This document shows, piece after piece, positions 2,755 through 62,623 of a stretch of 64,000 bases of DNA. Location of the stretch: positions 62,001 to 126,000 of the IMG/VR virus record IMGVR_UViG_3300021962_000021; one strand, 5' to 3'. The position numbers and the translations under genes were made by a program. Below the pieces are notes generated by a model that had not been told where the DNA came from, ran no database searches, and saw only the letters and a list, made by a program, of their open reading frames with translations. The first letter of the stretch is position 1, and the number at the start of each line of letters is the position of its first letter.

Positions 2755-2756
2755 CA

Positions 2757-2860: not shown

Positions 2861-2863
2861 AAT

Positions 2864-2937: not shown

Positions 2938-2942
2938 CATAT

Positions 2943-3052: not shown

Positions 3053-3061
3053 CCTTTATTT

Positions 3062-3135
3062 GGACCTATAGCTCAGTTGGTTAGAGCAGGGCACTCATAA
3101 TGCCAAGGTCACAGGTTCGAGTCCTGTTTGGTCCA
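3062..3135 (+). tRNA. tRNA-Ile2/Met(CAT), probably lysidine-type Ile2
   Basis: GGACCTATAGCTCAGTTGGTTAGAGC, loop CTCATAA, A73. Confidence 0.85.
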
Positions 3136-3140
3136 CACTT

Positions 3141-3213
3141 GCGGAAGTAGCTCATTCGGTAGAGCACAACCTTGCCAAGGTTGGGGTGGCCAGTTCGAGC
3201 CTGGTCTTCCGCT
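3141..3213 (+). tRNA. tRNA-Gly(GCC)
   Basis: GCGGAAG/CTTCCGC-T, CAACC-TTGCCAA-GGTTG. Confidence 0.93.
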
Positions 3214-3218
3214 CAAAA

Positions 3219-3267
3219 GGACTTAAATGGTTGATGTACACAACTGAAGTAGGTTAGTCCCACCTAC
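3219..3267 (+). ncRNA. putative small pseudoknot RNA
   Basis: GGACT/AGTCC crossed by GTAGGT/ACCTAC; inner hairpin GGTTG/CAACT. Confidence 0.4.
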
Positions 3268-3272
3268 AAATT

Positions 3273-3347
3273 GCGGGAATAGTATAACGGTTATTATGCC
3301 ATCCTTCCAAGTTGGATATGCCGGTTCGATTCCGGCTTCCCGCTCCA
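3273..3347 (+). tRNA. tRNA-Gly(TCC) with encoded CCA
   Basis: GCGGGAA/TTCCCGC-T-CCA, loop CTTCCAA. Confidence 0.9.
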
Positions 3348-3352
3348 CAAAT

Positions 3353-3423
3353 TGCCCTTTGGTGTAACGGTAGCACAATTGGTTTTGGTCCAATTAGTTT
3401 AGGTTCGAATCCTAAAGGGGCAT
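3353..3423 (+). tRNA. tRNA-Gln(TTG)
   Basis: TGCCCTT/AGGGGCA, ATTGG-TTTTGGT-CCAAT. Confidence 0.9.
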
Positions 3424-3441
3424 CATACTAAAATTGGAAAA

Positions 3442-6614: not shown

Positions 6615-6699
6615 GGAGAGATGGCAGAGTGGTTGAATGCACCGGTCTTGAAAACCGGCAACTGTAACAGGTTCTGGGGTTCGAATCCCTGTCTCTCCG
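6615..6699 (+). tRNA. tRNA-Ser(TGA)
   Basis: GGAGAGA/TCTCTCC-G, CCGGT-CTTGAAA-ACCGG, long variable arm. Confidence 0.93.
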
Positions 6700-6704
6700 C
6701 ACAT

Positions 6705-14724: not shown

Positions 14725-16041
14725 ATGGATATTTCTATGCGTAAGAAAAATGTTACAAAAACTACTAAATCGAAAACTATGGCTCGTAAAACGGCAAAGC
14801 GTGTGAGTGGACGCAAAACAACTCAAAAGACAGTGGATACCAATGTAGGTTTCACAAATGAATGTTACAAAATTGTGCAAGTGGGTAGAAGTTTCGCACT
14901 TATGACCACAAAGAGTGATATCATTGATACAAAAGTCGATGGTATTTCGAAACAAAAAATGAAACAAGCACATACGGAGAATAAAGCAATCCGTGGTTTT
15001 GTAAACAAAAGTGGTAATCTTTCTTACAAACTTGTTGAGATGGATGAATTTAAAAAATTAGCAAATGTTATTGAAGATGCTGCATGTGATAGTGTAAGTG
15101 AAGCATTTGAAACACACGAACATTTGAAACAATTTATCCACGAGAAAGGTGGTGAATTGAAACCTGAAGGATTATTCATTGAACCGCTTAAGTGGAAGTA
15201 TCTTCTTCGTTCAGCAGTTCGTGGTAAGAATATTATGATGACTGGTCCTACTGGTTGTGGTAAAACTTTGGCATCTCAATCGTTAGTTCGTTCATTGAAG
15301 CGTCCTGACTTTTATTTCAACTTAGGTGCAACGCAAGACCCACGTGCTACTCTTATCGGTAACACACACTTTAATAAAGAAAACGGAACATTCTTTGCTG
15401 AATCCGCTTTCGTAAAAGCAATCAGCACTCCAAACGCAATCATCCTATTGGACGAGATTAGCCGTGCTCACCCAGAAGCTTGGAATATCTTAATGACTGT
15501 GTTGGATGCCGGACAGCGTTATTTACGATTGGACGAGGCTGAAGGTTCACCAATTGTTAAAGTAGCAAATGGTGTTACATTCATCGCAACGGCAAACATT
15601 GGTAACGAATATACGTCTACACGTATTATGGACCGTGCGATTATGGACCGTTTCGTAACTATTGAAATGGATTTGTTGGATAAGGATAGTGAATTGGCAT
15701 TGTTGAAATTCAAATTCCCTGAAGCTGATGAATATGCATTACAAGCTTTATCCGAGATTGCTGATACAACTCGTCAGTTAATCAAAACTGATATGAGTAA
15801 AATCTCAACAATCATTTCGACACGTGTGAATGTGGAAGCTGCCGGTCTTATCTATGATGGGTTTACCTTAATGGAAGCGGCTGAAATCGCTATCTTACCA
15901 TATTTCAGTAATGATGGTGGGTTGGATAGTGAAAGAGTATTTATTAAACAACTTGTTCAAAAATATGTTAAATCAACAGATGAAGCACTTTTCAATGAAG
16001 TGAAAGATGAACAAGGTGATGAAGAAACTATCGTTTGGTAG
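14725..16041 (+). CDS. MoxR/CobS-like AAA+ ATPase
   Basis: GPTGCGKT, ILLDEISR, ATAN, DRAIMDRF. Confidence 0.9.
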   Translation: MDISMRKKNVTKTTKSKTMARKTAKRVSGRKTTQKTVDTNVGFTNECYKIVQVGRSFALMTTKSDIIDTKVDGISKQKMKQAHTENKAIRGFVNKSGNLSYKLVEMDEFKKLANVIEDAACDSVSEAFETHEHLKQFIHEKGGELKPEGLFIEPLKWKYLLRSAVRGKNIMMTGPTGCGKTLASQSLVRSLKRPDFYFNLGATQDPRATLIGNTHFNKENGTFFAESAFVKAISTPNAIILLDEISRAHPEAWNILMTVLDAGQRYLRLDEAEGSPIVKVANGVTFIATANIGNEYTSTRIMDRAIMDRFVTIEMDLLDKDSELALLKFKFPEADEYALQALSEIADTTRQLIKTDMSKISTIISTRVNVEAAGLIYDGFTLMEAAEIAILPYFSNDGGLDSERVFIKQLVQKYVKSTDEALFNEVKDEQGDEETIVW

Positions 16042-17589: not shown

Positions 17590-18534
17590 ATGGCAACATT
17601 TCAAAGGTATAATTATCGTTATGATGATTATGGTAATCGTAGAACGGATGAACAAATAGATGAACTAGAAACGCAATTTAATTTAGAACAAAAACAAAAA
17701 CAAAGTAAAATGTTTAAAACAATCGGAGCATCCATTATTGGATTTATTACATTAATGGTATTATTTGCAGCATGTGAAAGAATTGATGCAGGACACGTAG
17801 GTGTTAAAGTGAACCTTTATGGTGATAACAAAGGTGTAGCTGATGTAACGGAAGTAACGGGTATTGTATTCTTTAACCCAATTACGCATCGTATTTATGA
17901 GTTTCCTACCTTTATTCAACACAAAGAATATACAGGTGATAATTCATTTGTAGTAAACTCAAAAGATGGTAGTGAGTTCCATGTATCACCTATCGTAAAC
18001 TATTCAGTAAAGAGAGAAAAAGTTCCTTACATCTTTGCTAAGTATCGTAGAAGTTTAGAACAAATTGAAGAAGGTTTCTTAAAGACCGCAGTATATGATG
18101 CGTTTCGTTTAGCAACTAACAAATATACGGCTGATGAATTGATTAGTAATCGTGCTCAATTTGAGATTGAAGTTCGTAAGTTATTGGAAGGACAATTGTT
18201 AAACGAAGGATTTATGGTTAATCAGTTTACATCTAATTTGATTTATCCAGATTCATTCAAAGAAGCAATCAACGCTAAGAACAACGCAGTTCAAGCTGCA
18301 TTAAGAGCAGAGAACGAAGTTAAAACGGCAGAAGCACAAGCGAAGATTAAAGTAGCAACCGCAGAGGGTAACGCACAAGCATTACTTACATCTGCTAAAG
18401 CAGAAGCTGAAGCAAATAGAATGAAACAACAAACATTGACACCATTACTTATTCAAATGGAATATGTTAATAAGTGGGATGGTAAGTTGCCAGTTTATGG
18501 TCAAATACCTACATTGTTTAAGAATATTCAATAA
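17590..18534 (+). CDS. SPFH/band 7 (prohibitin) family membrane protein
   Basis: TM, IDAGHVGV, Ala/Glu-rich coiled coil (AEAQAKI...AEAEAN), KWDGKLP. Confidence 0.9.
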   Translation: MATFQRYNYRYDDYGNRRTDEQIDELETQFNLEQKQKQSKMFKTIGASIIGFITLMVLFAACERIDAGHVGVKVNLYGDNKGVADVTEVTGIVFFNPITHRIYEFPTFIQHKEYTGDNSFVVNSKDGSEFHVSPIVNYSVKREKVPYIFAKYRRSLEQIEEGFLKTAVYDAFRLATNKYTADELISNRAQFEIEVRKLLEGQLLNEGFMVNQFTSNLIYPDSFKEAINAKNNAVQAALRAENEVKTAEAQAKIKVATAEGNAQALLTSAKAEAEANRMKQQTLTPLLIQMEYVNKWDGKLPVYGQIPTLFKNIQ

Positions 18535-25981: not shown

Positions 25982-27076
25982 ATGAAATTAGAAACGATAT
26001 ACAAATCAACAAAGGGTGGTAAGGTGCAAGAGTGGACAATTGAAGTAATGGGTAATAAATACCGAACTATATCGGGTCAAACGGATGGTAAAAAAGTGAC
26101 TAACGAATGGACGGTAGTGTATGGTAAAAATATCGGTAAAGTGAATGAAACTACCGATAAGGAGCAAGCAATGTTAGAAGCAATTGCTAAACGAAAGTTA
26201 AAGTTAGAGCGTGGTTACTTTGAGAATATCAAACACATCAACAAAACTCAATACTTTGAACCTATGTTGGCGGCAAAGTGGGAAGATTACAAAGATAAAG
26301 TTGAATATCCTATTTTCTGTCAACCTAAATTGGATGGTATTCGTTGTATCGTAAACAAAGATGGTATGTGGAGTAGAAATGGTAAACCAATAATTTCAGC
26401 ACCACATATTTACGATTCACTTAAACCACTATTTGATGAGAATCCTGATTTGATATTGGATGGTGAGTTGTACGCTGATAAGTTCGCTAATGATTTCAAT
26501 AAGATTGTATCATTGGTTAAGAAAACAAAACCAACGGATACGGACTTAGTAGAAAGTAAAAAGAATATTGATTATCACATTTACGATTTACCAAGTGTTG
26601 ATGATACATTTAGAGTTAGATATTCAACATTATGTTCATTAAGATTGCCAAAACAATGTATCGTTGTAAAAACACATATAGTTAAAAGTGAAGATATACT
26701 GATGGAACGATATGGTGAGTATGTAGAAGCAGGTTACGAAGGACAGATGTTACGATTGGATAGCAAGTATGAGAATAAGAGAAGCAAATCTTTATTGAAA
26801 CATAAATCATTTGTGGACGAAGAATATATCATTAAAGATATTTGTGAGGGTGAAGGTAATAGAACTGGAACTGCCGGTTATATGGTATTTGAAACCGCAG
26901 ATGGAAAACCTTTCAAATCAAATGTAAAGGGAACATGGGAAGAAACAGCTGAGATGTTAAAGAATAAAAAGAAACTAATCGGTAAGGAAGCAACGGTTAA
27001 GTATTTCAATTTAACGCCGGATGGTATTCCTCGCTTTCCTTTTGTAACAAATATAGATAGAAATAGTTACGAATAA
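25982..27076 (+). CDS. lig: ATP-dependent DNA ligase
   Basis: PMLA, QPKLDGIRC (motif I), LDGELY, GYEGQMLR, LLKHK, PRFP. Confidence 0.93.
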   Translation: MKLETIYKSTKGGKVQEWTIEVMGNKYRTISGQTDGKKVTNEWTVVYGKNIGKVNETTDKEQAMLEAIAKRKLKLERGYFENIKHINKTQYFEPMLAAKWEDYKDKVEYPIFCQPKLDGIRCIVNKDGMWSRNGKPIISAPHIYDSLKPLFDENPDLILDGELYADKFANDFNKIVSLVKKTKPTDTDLVESKKNIDYHIYDLPSVDDTFRVRYSTLCSLRLPKQCIVVKTHIVKSEDILMERYGEYVEAGYEGQMLRLDSKYENKRSKSLLKHKSFVDEEYIIKDICEGEGNRTGTAGYMVFETADGKPFKSNVKGTWEETAEMLKNKKKLIGKEATVKYFNLTPDGIPRFPFVTNIDRNSYE

Positions 27077-32023: not shown

Positions 32024-32333
32024 AATAATAACACTATCAAATGAGATGATTGATTTGTTAGATGAAGCTCAGTTCTTTGAAGGTAATCCCTTTATTGAAC
32101 GATTACCACTTAAAAGAAAATTGCAAATTGCAATGCAAAGAAAGTGGGAACAAGAATTTGAAATGCATTTGACCGATTTAGAAGTTGAAAAAATAATGCA
32201 AGAAACTCTATCGGATTCGGTTGGTGATACAATTGAAAGTTTAGTGCAAAAAGGTGCATTGAATATGAGTATAGGGTCGGATGGTGAGATAGTTTATTCG
32301 GCAAATAAAGATTTTAACTTTGATGATTTATGA
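32007..32333 (+). CDS. hypothetical protein
   Basis: ORF. Confidence 0.65.
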   Translation: MDILPEIITLSNEMIDLLDEAQFFEGNPFIERLPLKRKLQIAMQRKWEQEFEMHLTDLEVEKIMQETLSDSVGDTIESLVQKGALNMSIGSDGEIVYSANKDFNFDDL

Positions 32334-33529
32334 TAGATAATAAGGAAAACAATTTTGAAAAAGAAATACTTAATAAGTATGCCTGCAATTCTCCATTTAA
32401 ATATATAGATGTTCAACCGCTTGGTAATTTCGTTTGTTGTCCTTTTTGGAATAAAACTAATTTAAGAGTTAATAAAGAAGGTGAACCAAATCCTTGGTTT
32501 GCAGTTGATGAAGATGAAGATTTATTAAGAAATTGGACTTCACCACAAGCCAAAAAAGTTAGAAGGGATATTTTAGATGGTTCATATGAGTCTTGTGATA
32601 AAGTTGTTTGTCCGTGTTTATCTCAAATATTAAGTAAGAGTCAAATTGAAGGTAAAGAGGTTATTCCATATAACTTTCAATTGAAAGAAGAACTGATGAA
32701 AGAATTAAATATCAGCTCGATAGAAGATATTGAAAACTTTGATATTACACCTGAGGAAATACTTTTTGGATTTGATAGAAGTTGTAATTACAAATGCCCA
32801 TCTTGCAGAACACATTTAATACCAAATGATGATGTTGATTCGATAGAATATAAAAGAAAAAAAATCATTATTGATAAAATAGATGAACAATATTCTTGGA
32901 ATTTAAGAAAAATTATAATAACAGGTTCTGGTGACCCGTTTTATTCAAAAATATTTAGAGAATATTTACAAAATTTTGACCCTAAAAAATATCCAAAGTT
33001 AAGAGAAATACAATTGGTTACGAATGGCTCTTTATTAAATAAGCAGATGTGGGATACCATGCCAAATATACATCAATATGTTAAGTGTATCGAAATAAGT
33101 ATAGATGCTGCAACTAAATTAACATATGAAACCAAAGTTAGATTGGGTGGAGTTTGGGAAACGCTTATACAAAATTTACTATTTCTTTCAAAATTAGAAA
33201 GTGTAGAAAGAGTTGTATTTTCTATGACTGTTAGTAAAAATAACTACAAAGAAATGTATATGTTTTGGGAGTTATTAAAACCTTTGTTCGAACATAAAAA
33301 AGTATTGGTTATAAATTATAGAAGATTGGTGCAGTGGGGAACATTTACACCCGAAGAATTAAAAGATTTATGTGTATTTGAAAAAGACCATCCATTGTTT
33401 TCCGATTTTATGAAAGAGTTAAAAAGAATACATCAACTACCACATGTTGATAATAATTTTAATGATTTGATTATTGAGGATGAAAAAGAAAAAACAAAAC
33501 CATTTAAAATACAAAAAAGTTTAATTTAA
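32330..33529 (+). CDS. radical SAM protein with N-terminal SPASM/twitch-like Cys cluster
   Basis: CNYKCPSC (CxxxCxxC), TGSGDPF, TNG, SIDA; N-terminal C..PF...CC...C..CP; ends QKSLI. Confidence 0.88.
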   Translation: MIDNKENNFEKEILNKYACNSPFKYIDVQPLGNFVCCPFWNKTNLRVNKEGEPNPWFAVDEDEDLLRNWTSPQAKKVRRDILDGSYESCDKVVCPCLSQILSKSQIEGKEVIPYNFQLKEELMKELNISSIEDIENFDITPEEILFGFDRSCNYKCPSCRTHLIPNDDVDSIEYKRKKIIIDKIDEQYSWNLRKIIITGSGDPFYSKIFREYLQNFDPKKYPKLREIQLVTNGSLLNKQMWDTMPNIHQYVKCIEISIDAATKLTYETKVRLGGVWETLIQNLLFLSKLESVERVVFSMTVSKNNYKEMYMFWELLKPLFEHKKVLVINYRRLVQWGTFTPEELKDLCVFEKDHPLFSDFMKELKRIHQLPHVDNNFNDLIIEDEKEKTKPFKIQKSLI

Positions 33530-33530
33530 A

Positions 33531-34937
33531 ATGAAAGTATTATTTGGATATGATATTATGACTTACAATGGTGAAATGCCAAATTGTCTGCATCCAAAAT
33601 TTTTGAATACAATATATCAAGCTTCCGATTTTAATTATGCATTCTCAGGAGAGCATTTTCAAAATAGATGGAATATCGGTTGGCATTTATATAATTCCAA
33701 TTTTTGGAATAACTATGTTGATAAAAAATCAGTATATGAAATTATAAATAATCACAAAAACACAAAATGGTTTTATCCGGTAGAACCGTTTGGAAGTATT
33801 GAAAGTTTTTTTGGAAACCATCCTACCTTTAATGAATTATGTTTAAAACAAATTTCATCAGTAGCATTGAATGAAATCAAAAGTGGTAATGGTAATTTAT
33901 TAATTAACTATATCATTGATGGTGGATTAGGAATTACAAAATCGAATTTCAAAAAGTTAGTTGATTTTACAAGAGAAAACGAAATACCCGATGAAAAGGT
34001 TTACCTGATATTTCAGGATTTTAAACTACAATCAAATCTTAAAAAGATGGGTGTTAATTACAATGTATTTGATTTTAATTTAGCACAACTATCTAAATCA
34101 CAGGAGTTTAATAACATAATTAATAATCCTGATTTTAAATTTTGGGGTGATAATTCATTTGAACCACAATTTGGACAAACCGAACATACTGCAAATAGTG
34201 TTTTAACATTTGAAGAATTTGAAAATAGTATAGGAAATCAAAAAAAGGATTTTTTATTTTTATGTAGACATTGGAAGTTGCATAGATTACTTATACTTTC
34301 AAAATTACATAAACTTGGAAAACTATTTTACAATAATACATCTTGGGATAAAAAGTTTTATCACGAAGATGTAATTACTGAATTTTTAAAACATGATGAA
34401 AATTTAGAATTGGCAGAAATAGTTAAAACGGTTTCTAAAAATTTAGATGTATCGGATTTGACTAAAATAGCAGGATATGGTTTTGAAAATAAATCAATAT
34501 ATTTAAATTCTTATATCAGTTTAGTTTCGGAATCTATATTTTTTCAAGTTAGAGATGATGAAGATGTATATGTAGAATTTCCAACAGGATATCTAAGTGA
34601 AAAGATTTGGAAACCAATAGGACACGCACAACCATTCATATTAGCCGGTCCTGCTAAATCTTTACAATACTTACAAAGTTTAGGATATAAAACCTTTCAT
34701 CCATACATTGATGAAAGTTATGATATAGAAACCGATGATTTTAAAAGATTGGAAATGATTTTTGAACAAATAGAAAAGTTTACTAAAAAATCAAAAGAAG
34801 AAAAGGATGAATTTTTACTTAATGTAAAAGATATTGTTAAACACAATCAGCAATTATTTTTAGATTATTCCAAAGAAGCATATAAAGATGATTGTAAAAA
34901 TATAATAAATTCATTAGCAAAACAAACTTTAATATAA
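33531..34937 (+). CDS. glycosyltransferase-like protein (GT10-like C-terminal motif)
   Basis: LVSES...LSEKIWKPI...QPFI...GYKTF...DESYD; ends KQTLI. Confidence 0.55.
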   Translation: MKVLFGYDIMTYNGEMPNCLHPKFLNTIYQASDFNYAFSGEHFQNRWNIGWHLYNSNFWNNYVDKKSVYEIINNHKNTKWFYPVEPFGSIESFFGNHPTFNELCLKQISSVALNEIKSGNGNLLINYIIDGGLGITKSNFKKLVDFTRENEIPDEKVYLIFQDFKLQSNLKKMGVNYNVFDFNLAQLSKSQEFNNIINNPDFKFWGDNSFEPQFGQTEHTANSVLTFEEFENSIGNQKKDFLFLCRHWKLHRLLILSKLHKLGKLFYNNTSWDKKFYHEDVITEFLKHDENLELAEIVKTVSKNLDVSDLTKIAGYGFENKSIYLNSYISLVSESIFFQVRDDEDVYVEFPTGYLSEKIWKPIGHAQPFILAGPAKSLQYLQSLGYKTFHPYIDESYDIETDDFKRLEMIFEQIEKFTKKSKEEKDEFLLNVKDIVKHNQQLFLDYSKEAYKDDCKNIINSLAKQTLI

Positions 34938-40355: not shown

Positions 40356-40898
40356 ATGTTTGATAAACTAATTGAAATAATAACTAGATTTTGGAATGAT
40401 ATTTTACCTTTCATTATAGTTGAACAATGGAATGAAGCTATACATTTAAGATTGGGTAAATATCATAGAACATTGAAGGCAGGTATTTGGATTAAAATAC
40501 CATTCTTTGATTCGATTATTGAAACAGCGGTAATTACACAAACTGTAAATTTGCCGGCGCAAACACTAACTACATTAGACGAGCAGGGAATTGTATTGAA
40601 AGCTTTGATTAGATATAGGGTGGTGAATGTAAAAAATTATCTTTTGAATGTGATGCACGCAAATGATGTATTGGTAGATACTACTATGGGAATGATTAGA
40701 GACATTGTTGAATTAACAACTTGGGCCGATTTGATTGATGTAAATGAACAAATAACTGCCGAAGTGAAAGAATTTGTAGAAAAATGGGGAATTGAAATTG
40801 AAAAAATAACAATAACCGATTTGGCAATTGTAAAAACTTTTCGTATATTAGGTGATGACATAAAACCTTTACCATTAAACGAATTTAACAATGGATAA
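40356..40898 (+). CDS. SPFH/band 7 (stomatin-like) protein
   Basis: LRLGKY, IPFFD, PAQTLTTLD, WGIEIEKITITD. Confidence 0.85.
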   Translation: MFDKLIEIITRFWNDILPFIIVEQWNEAIHLRLGKYHRTLKAGIWIKIPFFDSIIETAVITQTVNLPAQTLTTLDEQGIVLKALIRYRVVNVKNYLLNVMHANDVLVDTTMGMIRDIVELTTWADLIDVNEQITAEVKEFVEKWGIEIEKITITDLAIVKTFRILGDDIKPLPLNEFNNG

Positions 40899-53206: not shown

Positions 53207-53785
53207 ATGGTTATAGATGTATATAACGGAAAATGGGGAGTTCCCGCGAAATGTGGTTCTCGATATTTTTCTAAAACCGTATTATTACTTAATTCACACA
53301 TTAATATAAATTATAGAGTTCCGTTTGAAAAATTAAACAAACTGGGATTAGAAGTGATTATAATACGAAATCCACTTTCACATTTAGAATCTGCTTTACA
53401 AACGGAAGTGATGGAGTGTTGGGATGATTCGGATAAAATTCTAAAGATATTATTAAAATTTTCCGATATACAATTTGGTGGAACACACTATCATCCACAT
53501 TTTTGTGAAAAAATATATTATATTTGGTATAATAGTGAATTGAGAATAGTGGATTTATCCAATCTTTCCGGATTTATGGAAGAAATATTGAAAACCATAC
53601 CATACAATCAAAATGAATACGATTTTCATACTGAACCAAATTATAAATCAAAAAAAGAAGTTTGGGATAAGTGCGTTGATTTATATCCTGAATTGATGGA
53701 TAAATTGATTAGATATACCCAAAGTGATATGAAGTATTATAATGCTTTATTGAATAAGGATAAGAGTTTAATTAAAATAATATAG
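53207..53785 (+). CDS. sulfotransferase-like protein (degenerate)
   Basis: PAKCGSR (5'PSB-like), IRNPLSHLESA (3'PB-like); ends KSLIKII. Confidence 0.55.
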   Translation: MVIDVYNGKWGVPAKCGSRYFSKTVLLLNSHININYRVPFEKLNKLGLEVIIIRNPLSHLESALQTEVMECWDDSDKILKILLKFSDIQFGGTHYHPHFCEKIYYIWYNSELRIVDLSNLSGFMEEILKTIPYNQNEYDFHTEPNYKSKKEVWDKCVDLYPELMDKLIRYTQSDMKYYNALLNKDKSLIKII

Positions 53786-53849
53786 GGTCTATCAATAGAG
53801 ATACCAAAAATTTTCTTTTAAAAAACGACCTCCCCCAACCCCCACCCCT

Positions 53850-53881
53850 TTTGGTAAATTCAAAAATTATTCGTATATTTG
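53850..53881 (+). promoter_or_regulatory. Bacteroidetes-type promoter of the tailoring-enzyme operon
   Basis: TTTG-N20-TATATTTG. Confidence 0.7.
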
Positions 53882-53897
53882 TTCATAAAACTAAACT

Positions 53898-54461
53898 ATG
53901 ATATTAGAAGATAAAGGTATATCGGTAATTCCAAAGTTTCTATCAAATGAAGAATGTGAATGGATTATAGATAAATGTCTTTCTGATTTGGATTTAAAAG
54001 ATGCGGAAGTATACAATACATATAAAAAAGAAAGTCAGAAAAAGACAAGAAAATCAAAAGTTGCATTTGTGGGTGATTTAAATAACATCAATACAAAAAT
54101 TACAAATGAAATATTAAAAAGAACACCGAAACAAAGAGGTTATGAATTATATGTTGAAAGTTTTCAATTTACAGAATATAATGTAGGCGATTACTTTGAT
54201 TGGCATTCTGATTCAAATGATAATATCTTTAAAGATAGAATATATACAGTTGTGATACAATTAAATGATGAGTATACTTCTGGTGATTTTCAATTAATGT
54301 TAGAAAATTCTATAACATTAAAACCAGGAAAAGGTAATATGTTTATATTTCCATCGGCAATATTACATAGAGTAAAACCCGTAGAATCAGGAAAAAGATA
54401 TTCATTAGTTAGTTGGTTGAAATTAAAAAAAATAGAAAATAATAAAACAGAATTGATATAA
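53898..54461 (+). CDS. 2OG-Fe(II) oxygenase (prolyl-4-hydroxylase-like)
   Basis: DWHSD, LHRVKPV, RYSLV; ends KTELI. Confidence 0.88.
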   Translation: MILEDKGISVIPKFLSNEECEWIIDKCLSDLDLKDAEVYNTYKKESQKKTRKSKVAFVGDLNNINTKITNEILKRTPKQRGYELYVESFQFTEYNVGDYFDWHSDSNDNIFKDRIYTVVIQLNDEYTSGDFQLMLENSITLKPGKGNMFIFPSAILHRVKPVESGKRYSLVSWLKLKKIENNKTELI

Positions 54462-55114
54462 TGGAATTTACAAAATATAATTTCGGGCCCGAATTAATGA
54501 AAACCAATATTGATTTGGATTTATGTAAAGAACTTCTATCCGTTGGGAGAAATGAAATTTTAATAGATAATAAGCTCGATTCCATAACATTTGATACATC
54601 TTACAAATATAGTTTTGAAAATGTAAGTTATTTTAAAAATAAAATTTCCGTTTATATAGAAAATTATATAAAAGAAATTGCCAAAATTAGAAATTTAAAG
54701 CCATTTCGATTTGGAATTAATATTGAAGATTTATGGATTAATTTTCAAAAAAGTAGAGATTTTAATTCTCCACATTTTCATGCATATGATATATCCTTTG
54801 TAATATATGTGGATATGCCGGATGAAATTAAAAATGAAAAAACTATTAAAAGAGGATTTCAAAATGGAAGTATATCATTTTTATATGGACAAAATGTAAA
54901 AAAATTTGATTCAAATGCACAAGAATTTTCAAATACGGTAAATAGTTATATGTCACCGATAACACAGATAAATCATTCACCGATTACAGGGGAAATGTTT
55001 ATATTTCCAGCGTATTTAATGCATTATGTTAGTCCATTTTTTACAAAAGATGTAGAACGGATATCAGTTGCGGGTAATGTCAGTTTAATAGATAATAAAA
55101 AAAGTATAATATAA
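54461..55114 (+). CDS. putative 2OG-Fe(II) oxygenase (TIGR02466-like)
   Basis: WIN, PHFH, FPAYLMHYV, RISVAGN; ends KKSII. Confidence 0.8.
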   Translation: MEFTKYNFGPELMKTNIDLDLCKELLSVGRNEILIDNKLDSITFDTSYKYSFENVSYFKNKISVYIENYIKEIAKIRNLKPFRFGINIEDLWINFQKSRDFNSPHFHAYDISFVIYVDMPDEIKNEKTIKRGFQNGSISFLYGQNVKKFDSNAQEFSNTVNSYMSPITQINHSPITGEMFIFPAYLMHYVSPFFTKDVERISVAGNVSLIDNKKSII

Positions 55115-55401
55115 TGAGTTTTAATCCTAAAGAAATTATTAATGCTTGGATTACATCATTCAACCCTAATTCAACACAAAAGAGTTTAGCAGAAGAACGT
55201 ATGAGCATTTGTATGAAGTGTGAGTTTAGAAAAGAAATTATACACAATAAAAAATGGTCTGCAATATGTGGTGGATGTGGATGTCCTTTAGAAAAGAAAA
55301 TATTTACAGACCAGGCCGGAACATGTCCAAAATCAAAGTGGAATAGTGTTGAAGAAAAATATATAAAAACTCTAAAAGTTAAAACTAAAACAATTATTTA
55401 A
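55114..55401 (+). CDS. small Cys-rich protein (DUF6171-like)
   Basis: RMSICMKC, CGGCGCP, CPKSKW; ends KTKTII. Confidence 0.7.
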   Translation: MSFNPKEIINAWITSFNPNSTQKSLAEERMSICMKCEFRKEIIHNKKWSAICGGCGCPLEKKIFTDQAGTCPKSKWNSVEEKYIKTLKVKTKTII

Positions 55402-55403
55402 TT

Positions 55404-56045
55404 ATGAAAAAAATTACGTTTGAAGATGGTGTAGATTTGTATATAGTAAAATTAGAAAATACAAAGTTACAATCTGATGTTTTAGGAAATTGTATATCAT
55501 TTTTATCTACCGCCAATTATGTTCCCCAAGATAATTATCCATATTTAAACGATTGGGGTAGTTTTGATTTTAAAAAAGAAATGATACCATCGAATTATAT
55601 TGAAGAAATTATTAAAATTTGTTTGAATGAATGTGTTGAGTTAGGTATAAAAGATGAACTGAATTTTAATAAAGTTAATATTAATGCTTGGATAAATGTT
55701 GTAAAAACTGGAAAACCAAAACAAAATAATTTTAAATATGGTGGTGATGTTAAATTACATAACCACATAGATTTGCAAAAAATTATAAATTCTTTTTATC
55801 CGGAATATACTTTTGTATATTATGCCCAAATGCCAAATAATCTATCAGATACGGAAGGCACTTTAATAGTAGAAGGTAAAAACAAAAAAAGATATTATTA
55901 TTTACCAGAAGAAGGTGAAGTGGTTATTATGAAATCTAATTTAGAACATTCACCAAATAATTCACCCAATTCAACAAAAAATAGAATTGTTATAGCGGGT
56001 AATGTAGGATTTGAATCTGCGAAAAAAATTAGTAGTTTAATTTAA
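55404..56045 (+). CDS. putative 2OG-Fe(II) oxygenase
   Basis: AWINV, LHNH, LEHSP, RIVIAGN; ends KISSLI. Confidence 0.7.
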   Translation: MKKITFEDGVDLYIVKLENTKLQSDVLGNCISFLSTANYVPQDNYPYLNDWGSFDFKKEMIPSNYIEEIIKICLNECVELGIKDELNFNKVNINAWINVVKTGKPKQNNFKYGGDVKLHNHIDLQKIINSFYPEYTFVYYAQMPNNLSDTEGTLIVEGKNKKRYYYLPEEGEVVIMKSNLEHSPNNSPNSTKNRIVIAGNVGFESAKKISSLI

Positions 56046-56082
56046 AAAACCAATATATTTATATAAATAAGACAATAAAAAA

Positions 56083-57618
56083 ATGAAAGCATTAATAATT
56101 GGAACGGATTTTTTAAAGGATGCATCCGGTAATTTAAGAATAATAGAAACAAACACAAATGTGGATGTTCATAACAAAATTGTTCCACAATTGGATTGGA
56201 ATACATTTAAGCAATTTTTAATAGATAATTCTATTACAAAATTGCATTTTATATATACGGATGGTAATTTTATAAATACGGAAAAAGAAAATGTATTTGA
56301 TACAACAACAGAAAATATATCTTTAAAAGATAAAATGAGTGAAATAATGGTTGAATTATCAGGCACATTCAACCACTATGAAGTTCCTAAAAATTCAATA
56401 ACAGTTCCATATATAGAAGATGCGGATGATGTATTAATACTGAGAACATCATATGATACTACTGCATTAGTAGATGAAAATTATGCAAAAGATAAGGTAA
56501 ATTTTCATAGAGTAATTTCAAATGAAACATTTGCACCAAACGTGTATTATCATTCAGAAACTGATACAAATCTTAATATAGACCAATTAGTAAATTTACA
56601 TACTACAGCCGGCGATGCACCGAATTATATTGTAAAAACAAGATATCCAAATACAAATTATTTAACTTATCCAAAGTTTTACAAAATACAATCATTGGAA
56701 TCTTTACAATCTTTAAAAGATTCATTAACAGAATTGGAATATATAGAAGAATACCACACACACCCGGATAATTTTATTGATAATAAAATAGGCGTAATAA
56801 GAAGTTTGGATATAATATATGGTGGAACATTAAGTATATTACATTTGGGTTCGTATATTATGACGGCCGGTGTTGAAAATGATGCGTGGGTAACCGAATA
56901 TGATACAAATGGTAAAATGGAACAAAATTCCAGAGTATTATGGATGAGTAAATCCCTAATAAGTAAATTTGGTACAACTTATATTTTGGATGATGATACA
57001 CCAATATTATATTCAGATGGAAGTTTTAAATATCCAAATCAAATTTTAGTTAATGATTCATTAAAAACGATAACTCTTCCTTGGGTTCCACTAAATGAAA
57101 CATCCGAAACAGGAGAAGTATTATATATGCCAGATTTGAATTCAGGAAGTTTCAGCTCTGACTTAGAATCATTTACTCAATCAAATACAACCGTAATTGA
57201 TTTAGGAACACAAACTAAAGAATCCCTAATGATTAGGGTAACATTGGAAAATGGTATAGTTTATGAAGATTTGCCGGCTAGTTCTATGTTGGTAGAGGAA
57301 TACGATACATTACAAACTACATTTGTATTTACAAATAGATTTAGAATAAATGATTCAATTGTATTTTTTGATTATGTGAATAATACTTTAGTAAAATCAA
57401 AAATAACAAATTTGGAAATCGTATATGTTAATAAAAAAATATATGATATAAATGTTGAAACAAATGATTTGTTTTTACCATTAGCAGATGAAACATTGGG
57501 ACTTACTTTTGTACAACACAACGGTACATGTTATGGTTGGTGTGGTGCTTGGATGTGTGCAGTTTGGTGTTGTAGTGCATGTGGTTTCTGTGGTGGCCAA
57601 CCTCCTTCAAAACTTTAA
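56083..57618 (+). CDS. circularly permuted ATP-grasp / Hint domain / Cys-Trp-rich tail fusion protein
   Basis: N-terminal GTDFLKD..G..IIETNTN then YIVK, YIEEY; Hint blocks ILDDDTPILYSDGSFK..I.VND, IYDINV, QHN; tail GTCYGWCGAWMCAVWCCSACGFCGGQPPSKL. Confidence 0.75.
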   Translation: MKALIIGTDFLKDASGNLRIIETNTNVDVHNKIVPQLDWNTFKQFLIDNSITKLHFIYTDGNFINTEKENVFDTTTENISLKDKMSEIMVELSGTFNHYEVPKNSITVPYIEDADDVLILRTSYDTTALVDENYAKDKVNFHRVISNETFAPNVYYHSETDTNLNIDQLVNLHTTAGDAPNYIVKTRYPNTNYLTYPKFYKIQSLESLQSLKDSLTELEYIEEYHTHPDNFIDNKIGVIRSLDIIYGGTLSILHLGSYIMTAGVENDAWVTEYDTNGKMEQNSRVLWMSKSLISKFGTTYILDDDTPILYSDGSFKYPNQILVNDSLKTITLPWVPLNETSETGEVLYMPDLNSGSFSSDLESFTQSNTTVIDLGTQTKESLMIRVTLENGIVYEDLPASSMLVEEYDTLQTTFVFTNRFRINDSIVFFDYVNNTLVKSKITNLEIVYVNKKIYDINVETNDLFLPLADETLGLTFVQHNGTCYGWCGAWMCAVWCCSACGFCGGQPPSKL

Positions 57619-57630
57619 AAATAATTAAAA

Positions 57631-57750
57631 ATGAAAGATAAAATAATTTCTTCGGAAATAGTATTAACCAATAACACCACAAATCAGGCCATTGCAACTA
57701 TTATGCAGCAGGTCGCAAACTTAATTTATACGGATGTAACTGGTTCATAA
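57631..57750 (+). CDS. 39-aa peptide downstream of the Hint fusion (not in ORF track)
   Basis: MKDKIISSEIVLTNNTTNQAIATIMQQVANLIYTDVTGS, fills the gap. Confidence 0.6.
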   Translation: MKDKIISSEIVLTNNTTNQAIATIMQQVANLIYTDVTGS

Positions 57751-57761
57751 ATTTTATTAAA

Positions 57762-58496
57762 ATGGTTATAAATAATTGTATTGTTTTTATACCAATACCA
57801 AAAAATGCATCTTGGTCGGTAGAAGATACTTGTATTGAATACGGGTTGGATTTAACATATCCGAATATTTTATGGGAAAATTCTATTAAATTTGGAGTAA
57901 AAAATCCAGAAAAACATATTCATTCGGATATAAATTATTTAATTGATTCGCTTGGTATGGATTTTGAATTTGTATGTATAATAAGAAATTCTACGGATAG
58001 ATTTATATCAGCTTGGAAATTTTTTATACAAGAAATAATTCAAAGTATATCCGAAGAGGGTTCAAATATCCTTAAAAATTTAGATAATAATTTTATAATT
58101 TCTTTTTTTAAAGACAACATATACGAATTCAAAAATGCGTATATATCTTATGAAACTAGAGTAAATCTCCTAATAAAATTATTAGAAACGGCGGGTGTAA
58201 TTCAATATTATAATATATCCGATGAATTTAAAAAAAGATACGCAATACACATTATGTCATTCGTATCGCAATATCAATGGATATCATCATCAAAAGTAAA
58301 AGTAAAAGAATTTCATTTTGATAGATTATATGAATTTGAAGATTATATATCAAAAAAACTTAATATAGATTTTAAGTTAATTCATAAAAATAAAACGCAA
58401 TTAGATTATTCTGCAATATTGAAAACCGATGAATTAATAAAATTTGTCGATACATATATTGATGGTTCATACAAAAGAGTTAAATCTATTATTTAA
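57762..58496 (+). CDS. sulfotransferase family 2-like protein
   Basis: FIPIPKNASWS, IRNSTDRFISAW, SQYQW; ends VKSII. Confidence 0.75.
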   Translation: MVINNCIVFIPIPKNASWSVEDTCIEYGLDLTYPNILWENSIKFGVKNPEKHIHSDINYLIDSLGMDFEFVCIIRNSTDRFISAWKFFIQEIIQSISEEGSNILKNLDNNFIISFFKDNIYEFKNAYISYETRVNLLIKLLETAGVIQYYNISDEFKKRYAIHIMSFVSQYQWISSSKVKVKEFHFDRLYEFEDYISKKLNIDFKLIHKNKTQLDYSAILKTDELIKFVDTYIDGSYKRVKSII

Positions 58497-59317
58497 TGAA
58501 ATTATTTACATTCGGTGATAGTTGGACCGAAGGAGTTGGTTCCGATTGGCAGGAAGAATTAAAAACCGAAGATTTAGAAGAAAGAACAAAAATACGTCAT
58601 AAATACGCATGGCCTACATTGTTATCAAAACATTTAAATATTCCTTTTGATAATTTTGGAATAGGTGGTTGTTCTAATAAAAGTATATTTGATGCAGTTT
58701 GTAATTCAGTAGATACCGATTTAATTAAAAAAGATGATTTGGTTGTTATAATGTGGAGTTCATCTTTAAGAGATTCTGTTCCATTTTTTCCTGATAATAA
58801 TTCCTGGCACTATTGGGGTGAGAGATATAAACGAAAAGAATATTTGTATAAAAAAGTATTTAAAAATACAAATATAACTACAAAATACGATAGAATAAAA
58901 AAAGAATATCAAGAATATTTTTTAGCAAATTTATTTACGGATGAATATTATCAAATCGTAAACCAAAATTATATTTTATATTTACAATGGATGTTTAAAA
59001 AAATTGGTATAAGATATATTTTTTGTGATGCATTTGATTTAATGATAAAAGATGATATTTCAAAAAACATAGATAAAACTAATCTAATTGATAAAAACCA
59101 TTATTGGGGTATTTCAAATAAAACTTTAAAAGATTTATTAATAAATACAAATAGAAAGGATGTGTGGGGAGATGGACAACATTGGAAAGATTTAACAGAG
59201 GGTAAACATCCTAACAAAAATGGATATAAATTAATTGCGAATGAACTATATGATTTTATATTAAATAAAAACATATTAACATATAAGACGAACAATATCG
59301 AAAATATTATTATATGA
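58496..59317 (+). CDS. SGNH/GDSL hydrolase-fold protein
   Basis: FGDSWTEG, NFGIGGCSN, HPNKNGY; ends ENIII. Confidence 0.8.
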   Translation: MKLFTFGDSWTEGVGSDWQEELKTEDLEERTKIRHKYAWPTLLSKHLNIPFDNFGIGGCSNKSIFDAVCNSVDTDLIKKDDLVVIMWSSSLRDSVPFFPDNNSWHYWGERYKRKEYLYKKVFKNTNITTKYDRIKKEYQEYFLANLFTDEYYQIVNQNYILYLQWMFKKIGIRYIFCDAFDLMIKDDISKNIDKTNLIDKNHYWGISNKTLKDLLINTNRKDVWGDGQHWKDLTEGKHPNKNGYKLIANELYDFILNKNILTYKTNNIENIII

Positions 59318-59859
59318 ATTATTATATAAACAATTTGTTTGATAAAAAAGAATGCCAATCTATAATAGAATTTGCAGAAAATAATGGCATACAATTTTCA
59401 TATAATCCAAATGAAGTATGGGATTGTAAAAGAATTTATGATGATGAATTTAAATCAAATATAATTCAAAAAATCAAAGAAAAATATAATAAAAATGAAT
59501 TTAAATTATGGTTTGATTTGAATAAATTTAATATAAAGGATGTAAATATTAGTTTGACAAAGTATTATGATAATAGATGGTTGGATTTGCATTTAGATAC
59601 TACATCACAATTTACAACAGTTATAGTTTTATCGGCCGGATTTAGTGATGGTAGCTTCGTATTATCCGAAAAAATGGATGATATAAAAAATGGAAATAAA
59701 TACATACTAAATATTGGTGAATCTATTTCATTTGATGGTAGTAAAACATATCACGGTGTAATGCCAGTCTATTCAGGTATTAGATATGCATTAAATATAT
59801 GGATGACAAATACAGATTTTAAATATTATCAATTAGATAAATCAAAAAAATTGATATGA
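59314..59859 (+). CDS. 2OG-Fe(II) oxygenase
   Basis: LHLD, YHGVMPV, RYALNIW; ends SKKLI. Confidence 0.8.
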   Translation: MNYYINNLFDKKECQSIIEFAENNGIQFSYNPNEVWDCKRIYDDEFKSNIIQKIKEKYNKNEFKLWFDLNKFNIKDVNISLTKYYDNRWLDLHLDTTSQFTTVIVLSAGFSDGSFVLSEKMDDIKNGNKYILNIGESISFDGSKTYHGVMPVYSGIRYALNIWMTNTDFKYYQLDKSKKLI

Positions 59860-60380
59860 ATATTTTAATAATTTCCTTACCAAGAACAGGTTCCACCGAA
59901 TTAGGTAAAAAATTAGCAATTGATAATAAATTGGTTTATAATTTTGAACCATTTAATCCATTTAATAAAATAAATACTCAAAATAATATTCATAATGTAG
60001 TTATAAAAACAATTATATTTCATAAACCAAATTCTATAAAAGAATCCAATAGAGTAGACTGGTTAATAAGTTTGATATCAAAATTTGAAAAAACAATTTT
60101 ATTAAGTAGAAGAGATTTAAAGGCATGTGCGGAAAGTTGGTCTTATCTAAACTATAAAATGAAAACATCGAATTTTTCATCTATATCACAATATCTTTGG
60201 GAAAAAACACCAAACTATGATGAAGCATTTTATAACATAAAGTTGTGGAATGATGAATTAAACTATATATCGCAAAAAACAAATATACCAATAACTTATT
60301 ATGAAGATATCTATGATTTAAATGATAAAAATAGATTGAGAAAAGGAAATAAAGATGATTATAATTACAATTTAATATAA
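59856..60380 (+). CDS. sulfotransferase-like P-loop protein
   Basis: SLPRTGST, EPF, RRD....ES, YYEDI; ends NYNLI. Confidence 0.7.
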   Translation: MNILIISLPRTGSTELGKKLAIDNKLVYNFEPFNPFNKINTQNNIHNVVIKTIIFHKPNSIKESNRVDWLISLISKFEKTILLSRRDLKACAESWSYLNYKMKTSNFSSISQYLWEKTPNYDEAFYNIKLWNDELNYISQKTNIPITYYEDIYDLNDKNRLRKGNKDDYNYNLI

Positions 60381-61444
60381 TGATTGATTTAAAAGATTAT
60401 ATATGCAAAGTTCCATTTGAAATATTGGAAATACATGATGAATCTTATTTTTTATGCTGTGCAAGTTGGTTAAAAAAACACTTACCAAAGAATCAACCTA
60501 TGAAAGATGTGTGGAATAGTGATGAGGCAAAGGATATTAGAAAATCGGTATTGAATGGTTCATATCTTTATTGTGATAAAAAACAATGTCCGTATCTATC
60601 TCAATTAATAAATTTAAAAACCAATAATTTAGGTCCTATAAAACATTATTCTCAAATAGACCCATCTTTTTTTAATAATTACAATTTTGAAACAGGAAAA
60701 ATGTATCAGGGACCAAAAACCATACATATGAGTTTTGATAGGACGTGTAATTATAAATGCCCATCTTGTAGAATAGAAATGATTGTTGCAAATAGTGATA
60801 AAATACAAAAAATAAATATAACAATAGAAGAAATGGAATCTCTATATGCAAACGATATAGAAATGATATATTGTTCAGGCACTGCAGACCCGTTTGCTTC
60901 CGTTTCATATAGAAATTTTTTAAGAAAATTTAATCCTAAAAAATATCCAAATTTAAAATCAATACACTTACATACAAATGCCAGTTTATGGAATAAGGAA
61001 ATGTGGGATAGTATGCCGGAAATACATGATTATGTAAAGAGTTGTGAAATAAGTATTGATGCTGGTTCAAAATTTACATACGAAAATGTAACAAGATTGG
61101 GTGGTAATTGGGATAATTTAATATCCAATCTTAATTTTATTTCAACCATAAAAAGTATACAAACTGTAAAATGTTCATTTGTAGTTCAACAATCTAATTA
61201 TACAGAAATGTCTGAATTTTTAAGATTAATTACTTTCATATTTGGTAATAAAACAAAAGTATTTTTTGGAAGAATAACTAATTGGGGAACATTTTCCGAT
61301 GAAACCTTTAAAATGATTGATGTGGGTAATGTGCTACATCCAGAACATTCTTTGTTTTTAGATGAGTTCAAAAAGGTAGCCACCAATCCATATGTATTTC
61401 ATAATATGTATGATTTAATAGAAATAAAAAAATCTATAATTTAA
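60380..61444 (+). CDS. radical SAM protein with N-terminal SPASM/twitch-like cluster (paralog of 32330..33529)
   Basis: CNYKCPSC, SGTADPF, SIDAG; ends KKSII. Confidence 0.88.
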   Translation: MIDLKDYICKVPFEILEIHDESYFLCCASWLKKHLPKNQPMKDVWNSDEAKDIRKSVLNGSYLYCDKKQCPYLSQLINLKTNNLGPIKHYSQIDPSFFNNYNFETGKMYQGPKTIHMSFDRTCNYKCPSCRIEMIVANSDKIQKINITIEEMESLYANDIEMIYCSGTADPFASVSYRNFLRKFNPKKYPNLKSIHLHTNASLWNKEMWDSMPEIHDYVKSCEISIDAGSKFTYENVTRLGGNWDNLISNLNFISTIKSIQTVKCSFVVQQSNYTEMSEFLRLITFIFGNKTKVFFGRITNWGTFSDETFKMIDVGNVLHPEHSLFLDEFKKVATNPYVFHNMYDLIEIKKSII

Positions 61445-62150: not shown

Positions 62151-62227
62151 TGACATTATTTCCTAAAAAAAGTTTGGTATGATAGTTGAATAATAATAGT
62201 ATATTGTTTAACAAAAAAATTAAAACT

Positions 62228-62623
62228 ATGTATTACACAAATTTTGACAAAGTATTAGAATCTATTTTTGAAAGTAACTCTCCAGTTTGGGAAAACAAAT
62301 CAACAACATTTGTTCCTTCTAAATTTGCAGTTGATGTAAAAGATGATAAAGCACACATTGCTTTAGCAGTGATAGGACATGACCCTAAAAACATTGAAAT
62401 CAATTGTTATGAAGATAAAATTGAAGTTACTGCAACAAAAGAGAAAAAAGATTCACAAAACGCAGTTGACCAGTTGATTGGAAACATTAAAGAAACAATC
62501 ACATTGGGTAAAGACTTAGATGGTAGAAATGCAAAAGCGGAAATTAAAAATGGTATCTTATCAATCTTAGTAGAAAGAAAAGAAGAATCCAAACCAAAAA
62601 AATTAACCTTAAAAGTTGGTTAA
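62228..62623 (+). CDS. small heat shock protein (Hsp20/alpha-crystallin)
   Basis: AEIKNGILSILV...KPKKL. Confidence 0.85.
   Translation: MYYTNFDKVLESIFESNSPVWENKSTTFVPSKFAVDVKDDKAHIALAVIGHDPKNIEINCYEDKIEVTATKEKKDSQNAVDQLIGNIKETITLGKDLDGRNAKAEIKNGILSILVERKEESKPKKLTLKVG

Follow-up and report, generated by a model that had tools for sequence, protein, structure and literature searches.

Release of a C-terminal cargo by a domain of the Hedgehog/intein (Hint) fold is a known principle. When the nucleophile at position 1 is removed, as in the engineered Cys1Ala mini-inteins that serve as self-cleaving tags and in split intein circular ligation of peptides and proteins (SICLOPPS), Asn cyclization is the only reaction left and the downstream polypeptide is freed with a free N-terminus. 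Polymorphic toxins carry a HINT domain ahead of a highly variable, recombining cargo whose autoproteolytic release has been predicted (PMC3482391), and the BUBL proteins of Tetrahymena have the layout BIL-Ubl-BIL (Hint-payload-Hint; BIL, bacterial intein-like; Ubl, ubiquitin-like), in which BIL2 makes a Lys isopeptide (PMC8616854). In marine phages, dioxygenase, halogenase, and sulfotransferase genes stand together in cyanophage arrays, which in 2010 were taken for probable peptide-modifying systems whose substrate was unknown (PMC2938197), and the "host recognition clusters" of pelagimyophages mix fibers with such genes (PMC7029224). The gene discussed here lies in a 64,000-nt stretch (positions 62,001-126,000, hereafter the window) of the 238-kb IMG/VR viral contig IMGVR_UViG_3300021962_000021, our locus L007, and encodes a protein of 511 residues in which an ATP-grasp-like domain is followed by a Hint-like domain and a Cys-rich tail. 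The Hint-like domain appears to have lost the N-terminal half of intein chemistry and to have kept the C-terminal half. We consider it about an even bet that the protein is a self-processing precursor, with the Hint-like domain as a single-turnover asparagine lyase that would release the tail as a peptide resembling the ribosomally synthesized and posttranslationally modified peptides (RiPPs); the cleavage we infer from sequence conservation.

Pfam, PHROGs, NCBIfam, and a phmmer search of the PDB provide no usable match to the protein. INPHARED yields zero matches by DNA or by tblastn, and the family is therefore found in no cultured phage. A fold search of BFVD returns just generic Hint-containing viral proteins and no named full-length relative. 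Relatives are nevertheless numerous among uncultured sequences: a search of 5.8 billion proteins recovered 161, and an exhaustive search gave 253 representative clusters, with E below 1e-10 for 155. The relatives are all labeled "hypothetical," and the atlas clusters are at least 96% viral and assigned to Uroviricota. With approximately 250 clusters, all in large aquatic tailed phages, this is a phage-only and unannotated family. An AlphaFold2 (AF2) model of the protein built on 64 homologues has a mean predicted local distance difference test score (pLDDT) of 86.6, with residues 300-480 mostly above 85 and the tail below 50. The open reading frame (ORF), the start of Tyr300 (of YILDDDTPIL) at position 56980, the His-Asn codons, and the tail all lie exactly where a preliminary description of the window, drawn from its letters, had placed them (Table 1).

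That description had also proposed that the central region is a Hint domain limited to C-terminal cleavage, and the predicted structure of the region does have the Hint fold. Foldseek against the PDB gives 58 matches at E ≤ 1e-3, led by the Hedgehog Hint domain 1at0 (E 1e-7, target template modeling score (TM) 0.79) and followed by BIL2 (6y75, third-best), RecA, DnaB, and other mini-inteins, with KlbA also present; the matches at E 1e-7 (1at0, 6y75, and 2in0) have target TM values of 0.68-0.79. A second line of evidence comes from hhalign, in which the profile of residues 297-480 matches the genuine Hint domains of relatives over their full length at a probability of 98.3-98.7% and E ~1e-14, the reference being Pfam-verified second Hint domains located further downstream in some family members. 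The model-based assignment of residues 300-480 to the Hint fold is thereby confirmed, far above chance. The Pfam Hint models PF01079, PF13403, PF14890, and PF07591 give zero matches to this protein at E ≤ 1, and the same models do match the second, genuine Hint domain of relatives P0091 and P0105.

The hhalign alignment indicates which parts of the catalytic apparatus are gone. Hint position 1 is Ile301 and the -1 residue is Tyr300; over 239 family sequences position 1 is occupied by I, H, L, K, or G, by Ser in just seven, and never by Cys, so that the absence of an N-terminal Cys/Ser nucleophile, noticed earlier in this one sequence, extends to the family. The replacement of the block B TxxH motif holds as well, since D396-L-P-A-S400 takes its place with no His, and D396 is 85% conserved. 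At the other end, IYDINVE...FVQHN aligns with blocks F and G, in agreement with the earlier view that block F and the terminal His-Asn are intact. The block F Cys of class 3 inteins (WCT triplet) has no counterpart, as position 455, which corresponds to block F:4, is D, E, S, T, or N and Cys is absent from its eight commonest residues. A conserved polar set (D303, D396, S400, D424, E459, D462, H479, and N480) runs through the domain, and its dN/dS of 0.11 is the same as that of the enzyme domain. Purifying selection of equal strength on both domains argues that the Hint-like domain is not a decaying relic.

His479 and Asn480 stand out within this domain. The site is covered by 239 family sequences, of which 237 have Asn480 and 233 the His-Asn pair. 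These two residues are the only Hint positions within the twenty most conserved columns of the protein, at the level of the putative ATP-grasp active-site residues; the next Hint position is D424 at 87%. Both synonymous forms of each codon (CAC/CAT and AAC/AAT) are used across 71 unique genes. Sequences in which His479 is swapped (S, N, G, or Y) still have Asn480, and in natural inteins, likewise, the His can be replaced while the Asn stays. The only known role of the His-Asn pair in the Hint fold is Asn cyclization, and it is exactly this pair that is preserved. The residue after it is the non-nucleophilic Gly481, as first described. Of 233 sequences, 116 have G, P, or A at this place and only four have Cys; Asn/Pro is the autocleavage site of FlhB/YscU. 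One relative, P0135, was seen to have lost the His-Asn pair, and the Cys-rich tail is also absent there. The flanks of the Hint-like domain are a complete enzyme domain and a 31-aa tail rather than two halves of one protein.

The tail contains 7 Cys and 3 Trp in 31 residues, exactly as first counted, and has a reduced mass of 3233.8 Da. Short tails follow the His-Asn pair in 164 sequences (median 31.5 aa) and share the scaffold C-x2-3-C...C...C-x2-C, in which five Cys are invariant in a 64-sequence alignment and six is the usual number. The first tail Cys is at +2 in 95 sequences, at +3 in 73, and between +4 and +9 elsewhere. Of the 164 tails, 146 have an even number of Cys (six in 100, eight in 40), which favors disulfide or metal pairing. 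The first description is to be corrected in that the conserved scaffold has six Cys and not seven. Lys is last or second-to-last in 123 of 164 tails, often in (P)PxK-x.

Between these fixed points the tail is hypervariable. In sequences at least 60% identical overall, identity at the non-Cys positions of the tail is 24% versus 63-67% in the two domains, and in gene pairs that are 96-98% identical the differences cluster in the last 90-120 nt. For L009/L010 and for L026/L030 alike, 20 substitutions fall within the last 100 nt, against 0-8 per 100 nt elsewhere in the gene and in the DNA beside it. Codons that lie between fixed Cys codons are replaced by multi-nucleotide changes, which affect all bases and are not specific to adenine. 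Both pS and pN are raised in the tail, with a pooled dN/dS of 0.24-0.35, a pattern that fits small-scale import of divergent alleles or long-standing diversification and not simple positive selection. In the model the tail is unattached to the fold, and it behaves as an independent cassette. Hypervariability of this kind points to a fast-evolving partner, such as a host surface, a host defence, or a competitor. The 64-kb window contains no second, template-repeat-like copy of the tail DNA, and six-frame translations of 91 loci (within ~8 kb) contain no orphan tail cassettes by a strict pattern that itself recovered only 28 in-gene tails. An NCBIfam scan of the tail, including models of SCIFF-type precursors, gave nothing at E ≤ 10, and no Pfam precursor model matched either. 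A membrane anchor was considered and ruled out by eye and by composition, the tails being rich in Cys, Gly, Ser, Asn, and Tyr, often with Asp/Glu present.

The N-terminal domain was described at first as ATP-grasp-like, and this is supported by fold and motif and not by curated sequence models. Modeled alone with AF2, residues 1-294 reach a pLDDT of 93.9, and their only significant Foldseek matches are the eukaryotic glutathione synthetases 5oev, 3kak, and 1m0t (E 1e-4, probability 1.0, query TM 0.38-0.42), with PurK and RimK further down the list at nonsignificant E. The family profile aligns its first 26 residues with biotin, pyruvate, and 2-oxoglutarate carboxylases, at motif level only (E ~1). 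In ATP-grasp enzymes of the biotin carboxylase type, the Mg-binding E-x-N strand pair sits near the C-terminus. Eukaryotic glutathione synthetase is the textbook circular permutation of ATP-grasp, and it activates a peptide C-terminal carboxylate. Because that enzyme is permuted and the E-x-N strand is N-terminal here, the reading of a permuted ATP-grasp domain is consistent. No ATP-grasp Pfam model matches the protein itself, and 6 of 73 relatives have sub-threshold matches to RimK, ATPgrasp_ST, or GSP_synth. In 221 full-length sequences E22, N24, R121, and D131 never vary, and conservation of D9, K185, and R240 is 99% or higher, which argues for an active enzyme. The ATP-grasp assignment is reasonable at the level of fold and motif only and is less secure than the Hint assignment.

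What follows the His-Asn pair in other family members bears on the fate of the tail. In 29 relatives an S74-type self-cleaving chaperone domain comes directly after the tail. This Peptidase_S74-like add-on (SDISYKENL...IAQELI...VDYxKIDVEFKK) was seen in P0022, P0097, P0116, P0119, P0120, and ~24 others, and the Pfam S74 match is weak, with only E 0.011, in P0097. By analogy with endosialidases, a cut at the SD[IV]xxKxN start of S74 would place the new C-terminus on a Lys or close to one in several inspected examples (..CDQK, ..GYGK). A further 19 relatives have a genuine Cys1 Hint domain after the tail, between its last CxxC and the terminal Lys, that ends in His-Asn followed by K, N, or V. 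Such inserts occur in P0091, P0105, P0123, P0125, P0137, P0138, P0144, P0222, P0236, and others, alternatively directly after the His-Asn pair; some hold inserts of 150-200 aa, and at +1 these domains have Lys, Asn, or Val in place of Cys, Ser, or Thr. Were the flanks of such an add-on joined, the canonical tail end would be restored, and a Lys-dependent ligation as in Tetrahymena BIL2 (PMC8616854) is a possibility by analogy. In the Hint(HN)-tail-Hint(Cys1) and tail-S74 relatives, the tail is placed between two predicted self-cleaving junctions. Another 19 relatives have other long cargos of up to 1242 aa. The distant members P0253 (L005 150-5153), P0246, and P0247 have 700-1242 aa after the His-Asn pair, with a faint BACON match, and the P0253 gene is directly upstream of a tail sheath gene.

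Table 1. Positions of the gene, its parts, and its neighbors within the window
Feature	Position	Strand	Basis
Gene for the ATP-grasp-like, Hint-like, and Cys-rich tail protein, 511 aa, uninterrupted	56083..57618	+	ORF list, sequence
Circularly permuted ATP-grasp-like ligase domain, residues 1-294	56083..56964	+	AF2, Foldseek, conservation
D9...E22-x-N24 motif (DFLKDASGNLRIIETNTN), like the ATP-grasp Mg/ATP-site strand pair but at the N-terminus	56107..56160	+	Profile alignment
Degenerate Hint fold, residues 300-480; Ile at position 1, without TxxH, blocks F and G kept	56980..57522	+	AF2, Foldseek, hhalign
His479-Asn480 (CAC AAC), proposed Asn-cyclization (asparagine lyase) site; bond Asn480/Gly481	57517..57522	+	Conservation
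31-aa hypervariable tail GTCYGWCGAWMCAVWCCSACGFCGGQPPSKL, Trp- and Gly-rich, ends PPSKL; six-Cys scaffold plus one extra Cys	57523..57615	+	Sequence
2-Oxoglutarate-Fe(II) oxygenases, upstream	53898-54461, 54461-55114, 55404-56045	+	Pfam; beside the gene in 66-67/85 loci; all end [LI]I
95-aa Cys-rich (CxxC...CGGCGC...C) DUF6171-like protein	55114..55401	+	Weak Pfam DUF6171 match
Conserved 39-aa ORF (MKDKIISSEIVLTNNTT...; MKDKIISSEIVLTNNTTNQAIATIMQQVANLIYTDVTGS), directly downstream	57631..57750	+	Recurrence in related loci
244-aa protein, GDSL/DUF6071 hydrolase, 181-aa protein, sulfotransferase-like, radical-SAM, downstream	57762..61444	+	Pfam, NCBIfam; order kept in 25-63/85 loci; all end [LI]I
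Other identifiable window genes, in order: RNA ligase; AAA-type protein (PHROG "porphyrin biosynthesis" match); phrog_200 "lipoprotein"; ATP-dependent DNA ligase; SPFH/Band 7; Hsp20	4480-5607; 14725-16041; 17590-18534; 25982-27076; 40356-40898; 62186-62623

The neighborhood was counted over 85 related loci, in which the neighbors recur down to 31% identity despite local rearrangements. The recurring set comprises two or three 2-oxoglutarate-Fe(II) oxygenases, the unannotated 244-aa protein, the DUF6171-like protein, the gene itself, a small ORF, GDSL/DUF6071, the 181-aa protein, the sulfotransferase-like protein, and a radical S-adenosylmethionine (radical-SAM) enzyme. The most constant neighbor is the DUF6171-like gene, found in 74 of the 85 loci and usually immediately upstream (median offset -351 nt), and its product is known from viral clusters only. 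Some related loci add adenosine 5'-phosphosulfate (APS) kinase, tryptophan halogenase, carbamoyltransferase, and further radical-SAM/SPASM genes. The tryptophan halogenase and carbamoyltransferase (L003 7341-8576; L004 6630-8297) lie within ~3.5 kb of a homologue with Trp-rich tails. As for the radical-SAM genes, relatives have up to five upstream of the gene, and the two in the window (32330-33529 and 60380-61444) show sub-threshold similarity to the twitch-domain radical-SAM family only, apart from the first, which is also sub-threshold to SPASM-type peptide maturases and weakly matches the Cys-every-fifth maturase CefB.

An ORF of 38-47 aa similar to the 39-aa ORF of the window lies on the 3' side of the gene in L001, L003, L004, L006, L087, and L088, and on its 5' side in L005; tblastn finds it in 16 loci, and it is conserved even in distant ones. 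It stays constant while the tail changes, and this lack of covariation argues against a toxin-immunity pair, a reading that we considered and that is weakened accordingly.

Many enzymes of the island share a short C-terminal tag. Twelve of the 84 window ORFs end in [L/I]-Ile, all of them in 32330-34937 or 53207-61444, and none of the other 72 do. In related loci (L001-L088) 550 of 1340 ORFs carry the tag, with the consensus K-K-[S/T/K]-[L/I]-I-COOH, and nearly all modification-type enzymes of the island bear it, including the 2-oxoglutarate oxygenases, sulfotransferase-like, GDSL, radical-SAM, and DUF6171-like proteins, and the Trp halogenase of L003. The tag is absent from the ATP-grasp/Hint protein, from the small downstream ORF, and from fiber-like proteins, and it is absent from the dioxygenase island of Syn9, a phage without the gene. 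A DNA-level signal (overlapping stop-start, AT-rich leader) as the main cause of these ends was rejected by codon usage. The Ser, Thr, Leu, and Lys codons at the tag mirror background usage, all three stop codons occur, and only the final Ile shows an ATA bias, attributed to ATATGA overlaps; this codon usage argues for selection at the protein level. The tag may be a common docking or targeting signal, and a candidate receptor for it would be an ATP-grasp domain of the kind that recognizes C-terminal carboxylates.

The window is about 30% GC with all genes on the same strand. It has 16 tRNA genes (1133-3424 and 6615-6700), 15 of them inside 2.3 kb, including two tRNA-Met and a tRNA-Ser with anticodon ACT as called by ARAGORN. 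The DNA ligase is nearest to those of an uncultured 595-kb phage (50%) and of T4-like phages of Alphaproteobacteria, and the six other gene identities in Table 1 together fit a large T4-like marine myophage.

If the protein processes itself, the chemistry can be laid out in three steps. Conservation suggests that the side-chain amide of Asn480, with help from His479, would attack the residue's own backbone carbonyl and break the Asn480/Gly481 bond. The ATP-grasp-Hint body of 54.9 kDa would then end in a succinimide, and the 31 residues of the tail (3.23 kDa) would come free with an exposed alpha-amine. The even Cys counts suggest that the six-Cys scaffold would then be locked, most likely by three disulfides or as a metal cluster. 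More speculatively, the fused ligase and the clustered enzymes might modify, cyclize, or conjugate the tail before or after release, and the locus would be a RiPP-type cluster whose "leader" removes itself.

Several observations count against this reading. At block F position 462, where many inteins have a His that assists Asn cyclization, 187 of the 239 sequences have Asp and only 30 have His. The tail dN/dS rather suggests relaxed or mosaic evolution and does not clearly indicate positive selection. The ATP-grasp label depends on a modest TM (~0.4) and on sub-threshold sequence matches, and the phages, being related, could owe part of the enzyme gene clustering to common descent. S74 domains are typically found on trimeric fiber proteins, and their presence as add-ons hints at a structural role. 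One relative has just a 7-aa Cys-free PAPPPKL after the His-Asn pair and others have cargos of 700-1242 aa next to tail genes, so that a small Cys-rich peptide would not be the universal product.

Part of this same evidence feeds the strongest alternative, which we regard as possible and clearly less probable than self-processing: that no cleavage occurs and the tail is an attached hypervariable C-terminal knob, stabilized by disulfides or zinc. The knob would be a host-surface binding tip or a metal-sensing regulatory tail of the ATP-grasp enzyme, the His-Asn pair would be kept for structural or other catalytic reasons, and the S74 and Hint add-ons of relatives would be removed only to expose the conserved Lys-containing C-terminus. 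Intramolecular-chaperone add-ons of the S74 kind, common on phage fibers and spikes, do follow the tail directly in those 29 relatives, the island resembles a pelagimyophage "host recognition cluster" (PMC7029224) and is near fiber-like genes in L001 and L003, and one long-cargo relative adjoins a tail sheath gene. Localized hypervariability is what a receptor-binding tip would be expected to show, and conservation of the terminal Lys speaks for a role of the protein's own C-terminus. An attached knob nonetheless leaves unexplained why the His-Asn pair tops the conservation of the Hint-like domain while the other catalytic blocks decayed. The tail is also predicted to be detached from the fold, and an ATP-grasp enzyme with an apparently intact active site would be an odd carrier for a structural tip.

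A more elaborate version of the peptide-releasing reading, which we think unlikely, is a phage machine for knotted six-Cys peptides, possibly cyclized head to tail or conjugated to proteins. Here the Hint remnant would expose the alpha-amine, and the ATP-grasp domain would activate a C-terminal carboxylate and make a new amide bond, the carboxylate coming either from the tail's own K-x end or from the K-K-[S/T]-L-I tags of the neighbors. The shared tag would recruit the tailoring enzymes to the ATP-grasp/Hint protein as a hub.

Splicing would demand a different use of the same residues. In a class-2-like reaction, the tail's first Cys would attack at Tyr300-Ile301, Asn480 would cyclize, and the ATP-grasp domain would be joined to the tail with the Hint-like domain discarded. 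A missing position-1 nucleophile is characteristic of class-2 inteins, among them Mja KlbA, which also appears in the list of fold matches, and Tyr300 (-1) and Cys483 are invariant in the 64-sequence alignment. This route is very improbable, however, as there is no TxxH block to activate the N-terminal junction, the attacking Cys would lie not at +1 but at +2, +3, or +4 to +9, Tyr300 is not kept in the wider family (K, P, L, F, and G occur), and tail-less members retain the His-Asn pair.

The sharp hotspot of ~70-90 nt at the 3' end of the gene might suggest that a diversity-generating retroelement, or some other system of targeted hypermutation, acts on the tail. Such an origin is scarcely credible: the missing template-like repeat in the window makes a retroelement unlikely, and the changes are not adenine-specific and the strict scan found no orphan cassettes. 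The last reading, a functionless relic of a decayed intein with the tail as a low-constraint extension, could appeal to the two lost catalytic blocks and is effectively refuted by the conservation data, since the domain is at the same place in ~230 divergent sequences with the dN/dS of the enzyme domain and a conserved polar set, and the tail retains its exact Cys scaffold and terminal Lys.

The family was not found described in the literature searched, and it is covered by no curated family model. A natural family with a Hint domain apparently reduced to the C-terminal reaction alone seems to be undescribed, as do the fusion of a Hint domain to a permuted ATP-grasp domain, a hypervariable six-Cys cargo of ~31 aa, and the conserved enzyme cluster around it. 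If the cut occurs, the family would provide a natural and widespread Hint domain that is purely a C-terminal asparagine lyase, a built-in "leader peptidase" for a ribosomal peptide. The tail would then be a candidate substrate for the dioxygenase, halogenase, sulfotransferase, and radical-SAM arrays in marine myophage islands (PMC2938197, PMC7029224), and a hypervariable peptide would join the known means of conflict between phages and hosts or among phages. As a natural self-cleaving tag, the minimal Hint domain could be of use, and the shared C-terminal tag of the neighbors suggests an unrecognized organization of a multi-enzyme pathway.

The known systems each resemble a part of this protein. 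The enzyme domain has its best fold match in eukaryotic glutathione synthetase (1m0t, 3kak, and 5oev), and its N-terminal E-x-N metal-site strand is consistent with a permuted ATP-grasp, but identity is ~10% at a TM of ~0.4 and the domain has ~290 aa versus ~450-470 aa. Cys-rich RiPP precursors (SCIFF/ranthipeptides, Cys-every-fifth) and cyclotide-type six-Cys peptides are similar to the tail in having a core of ~30 aa with fixed Cys and variable loops, and the radical-SAM genes nearby, sub-threshold to the twitch-domain and SPASM-type families, add to the likeness. The difference is in the "leader," which here would be a 480-aa two-domain protein with no need of a leader peptidase. For the Hint-like domain, Hedgehog/Hog (1at0) is the best structural match but has the opposite polarity, with N-terminal cleavage through Cys1 and no terminal His-Asn. 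Engineered C-terminal-cleaving inteins are laboratory constructs that retain block B, whereas this family is natural, ancient, and diversified. Pretoxin-HINT (PF07591) likewise stands immediately before a variable C-terminal cargo; it differs in that our cargo is a ~31-aa peptide and not a toxin domain, has no covarying immunity gene, and belongs to a phage-encoded protein with an enzyme at its start, without secretion or RHS modules and without a PF07591 match. The BIL domains, including BIL2 of Tetrahymena BUBL (6y75), are Hint folds in variable proteins that cleave at their ends rather than splice and of which the A-type ends in His-Asn. They retain Cys1 and block B, both of which are lost throughout this family, and we know of no BIL with an ATP-grasp domain or a 30-aa Cys-rich cargo as fusion partner. 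The BUBL layout is mirrored by the relatives with a genuine Hint domain after the tail. The order in which a Hint domain would cut just before its payload is supported by three observations: the Hint-tail-Hint relatives have the layout of BUBL, polymorphic toxins place HINT before the cargo, and Cys1Ala inteins cleave only C-terminally.

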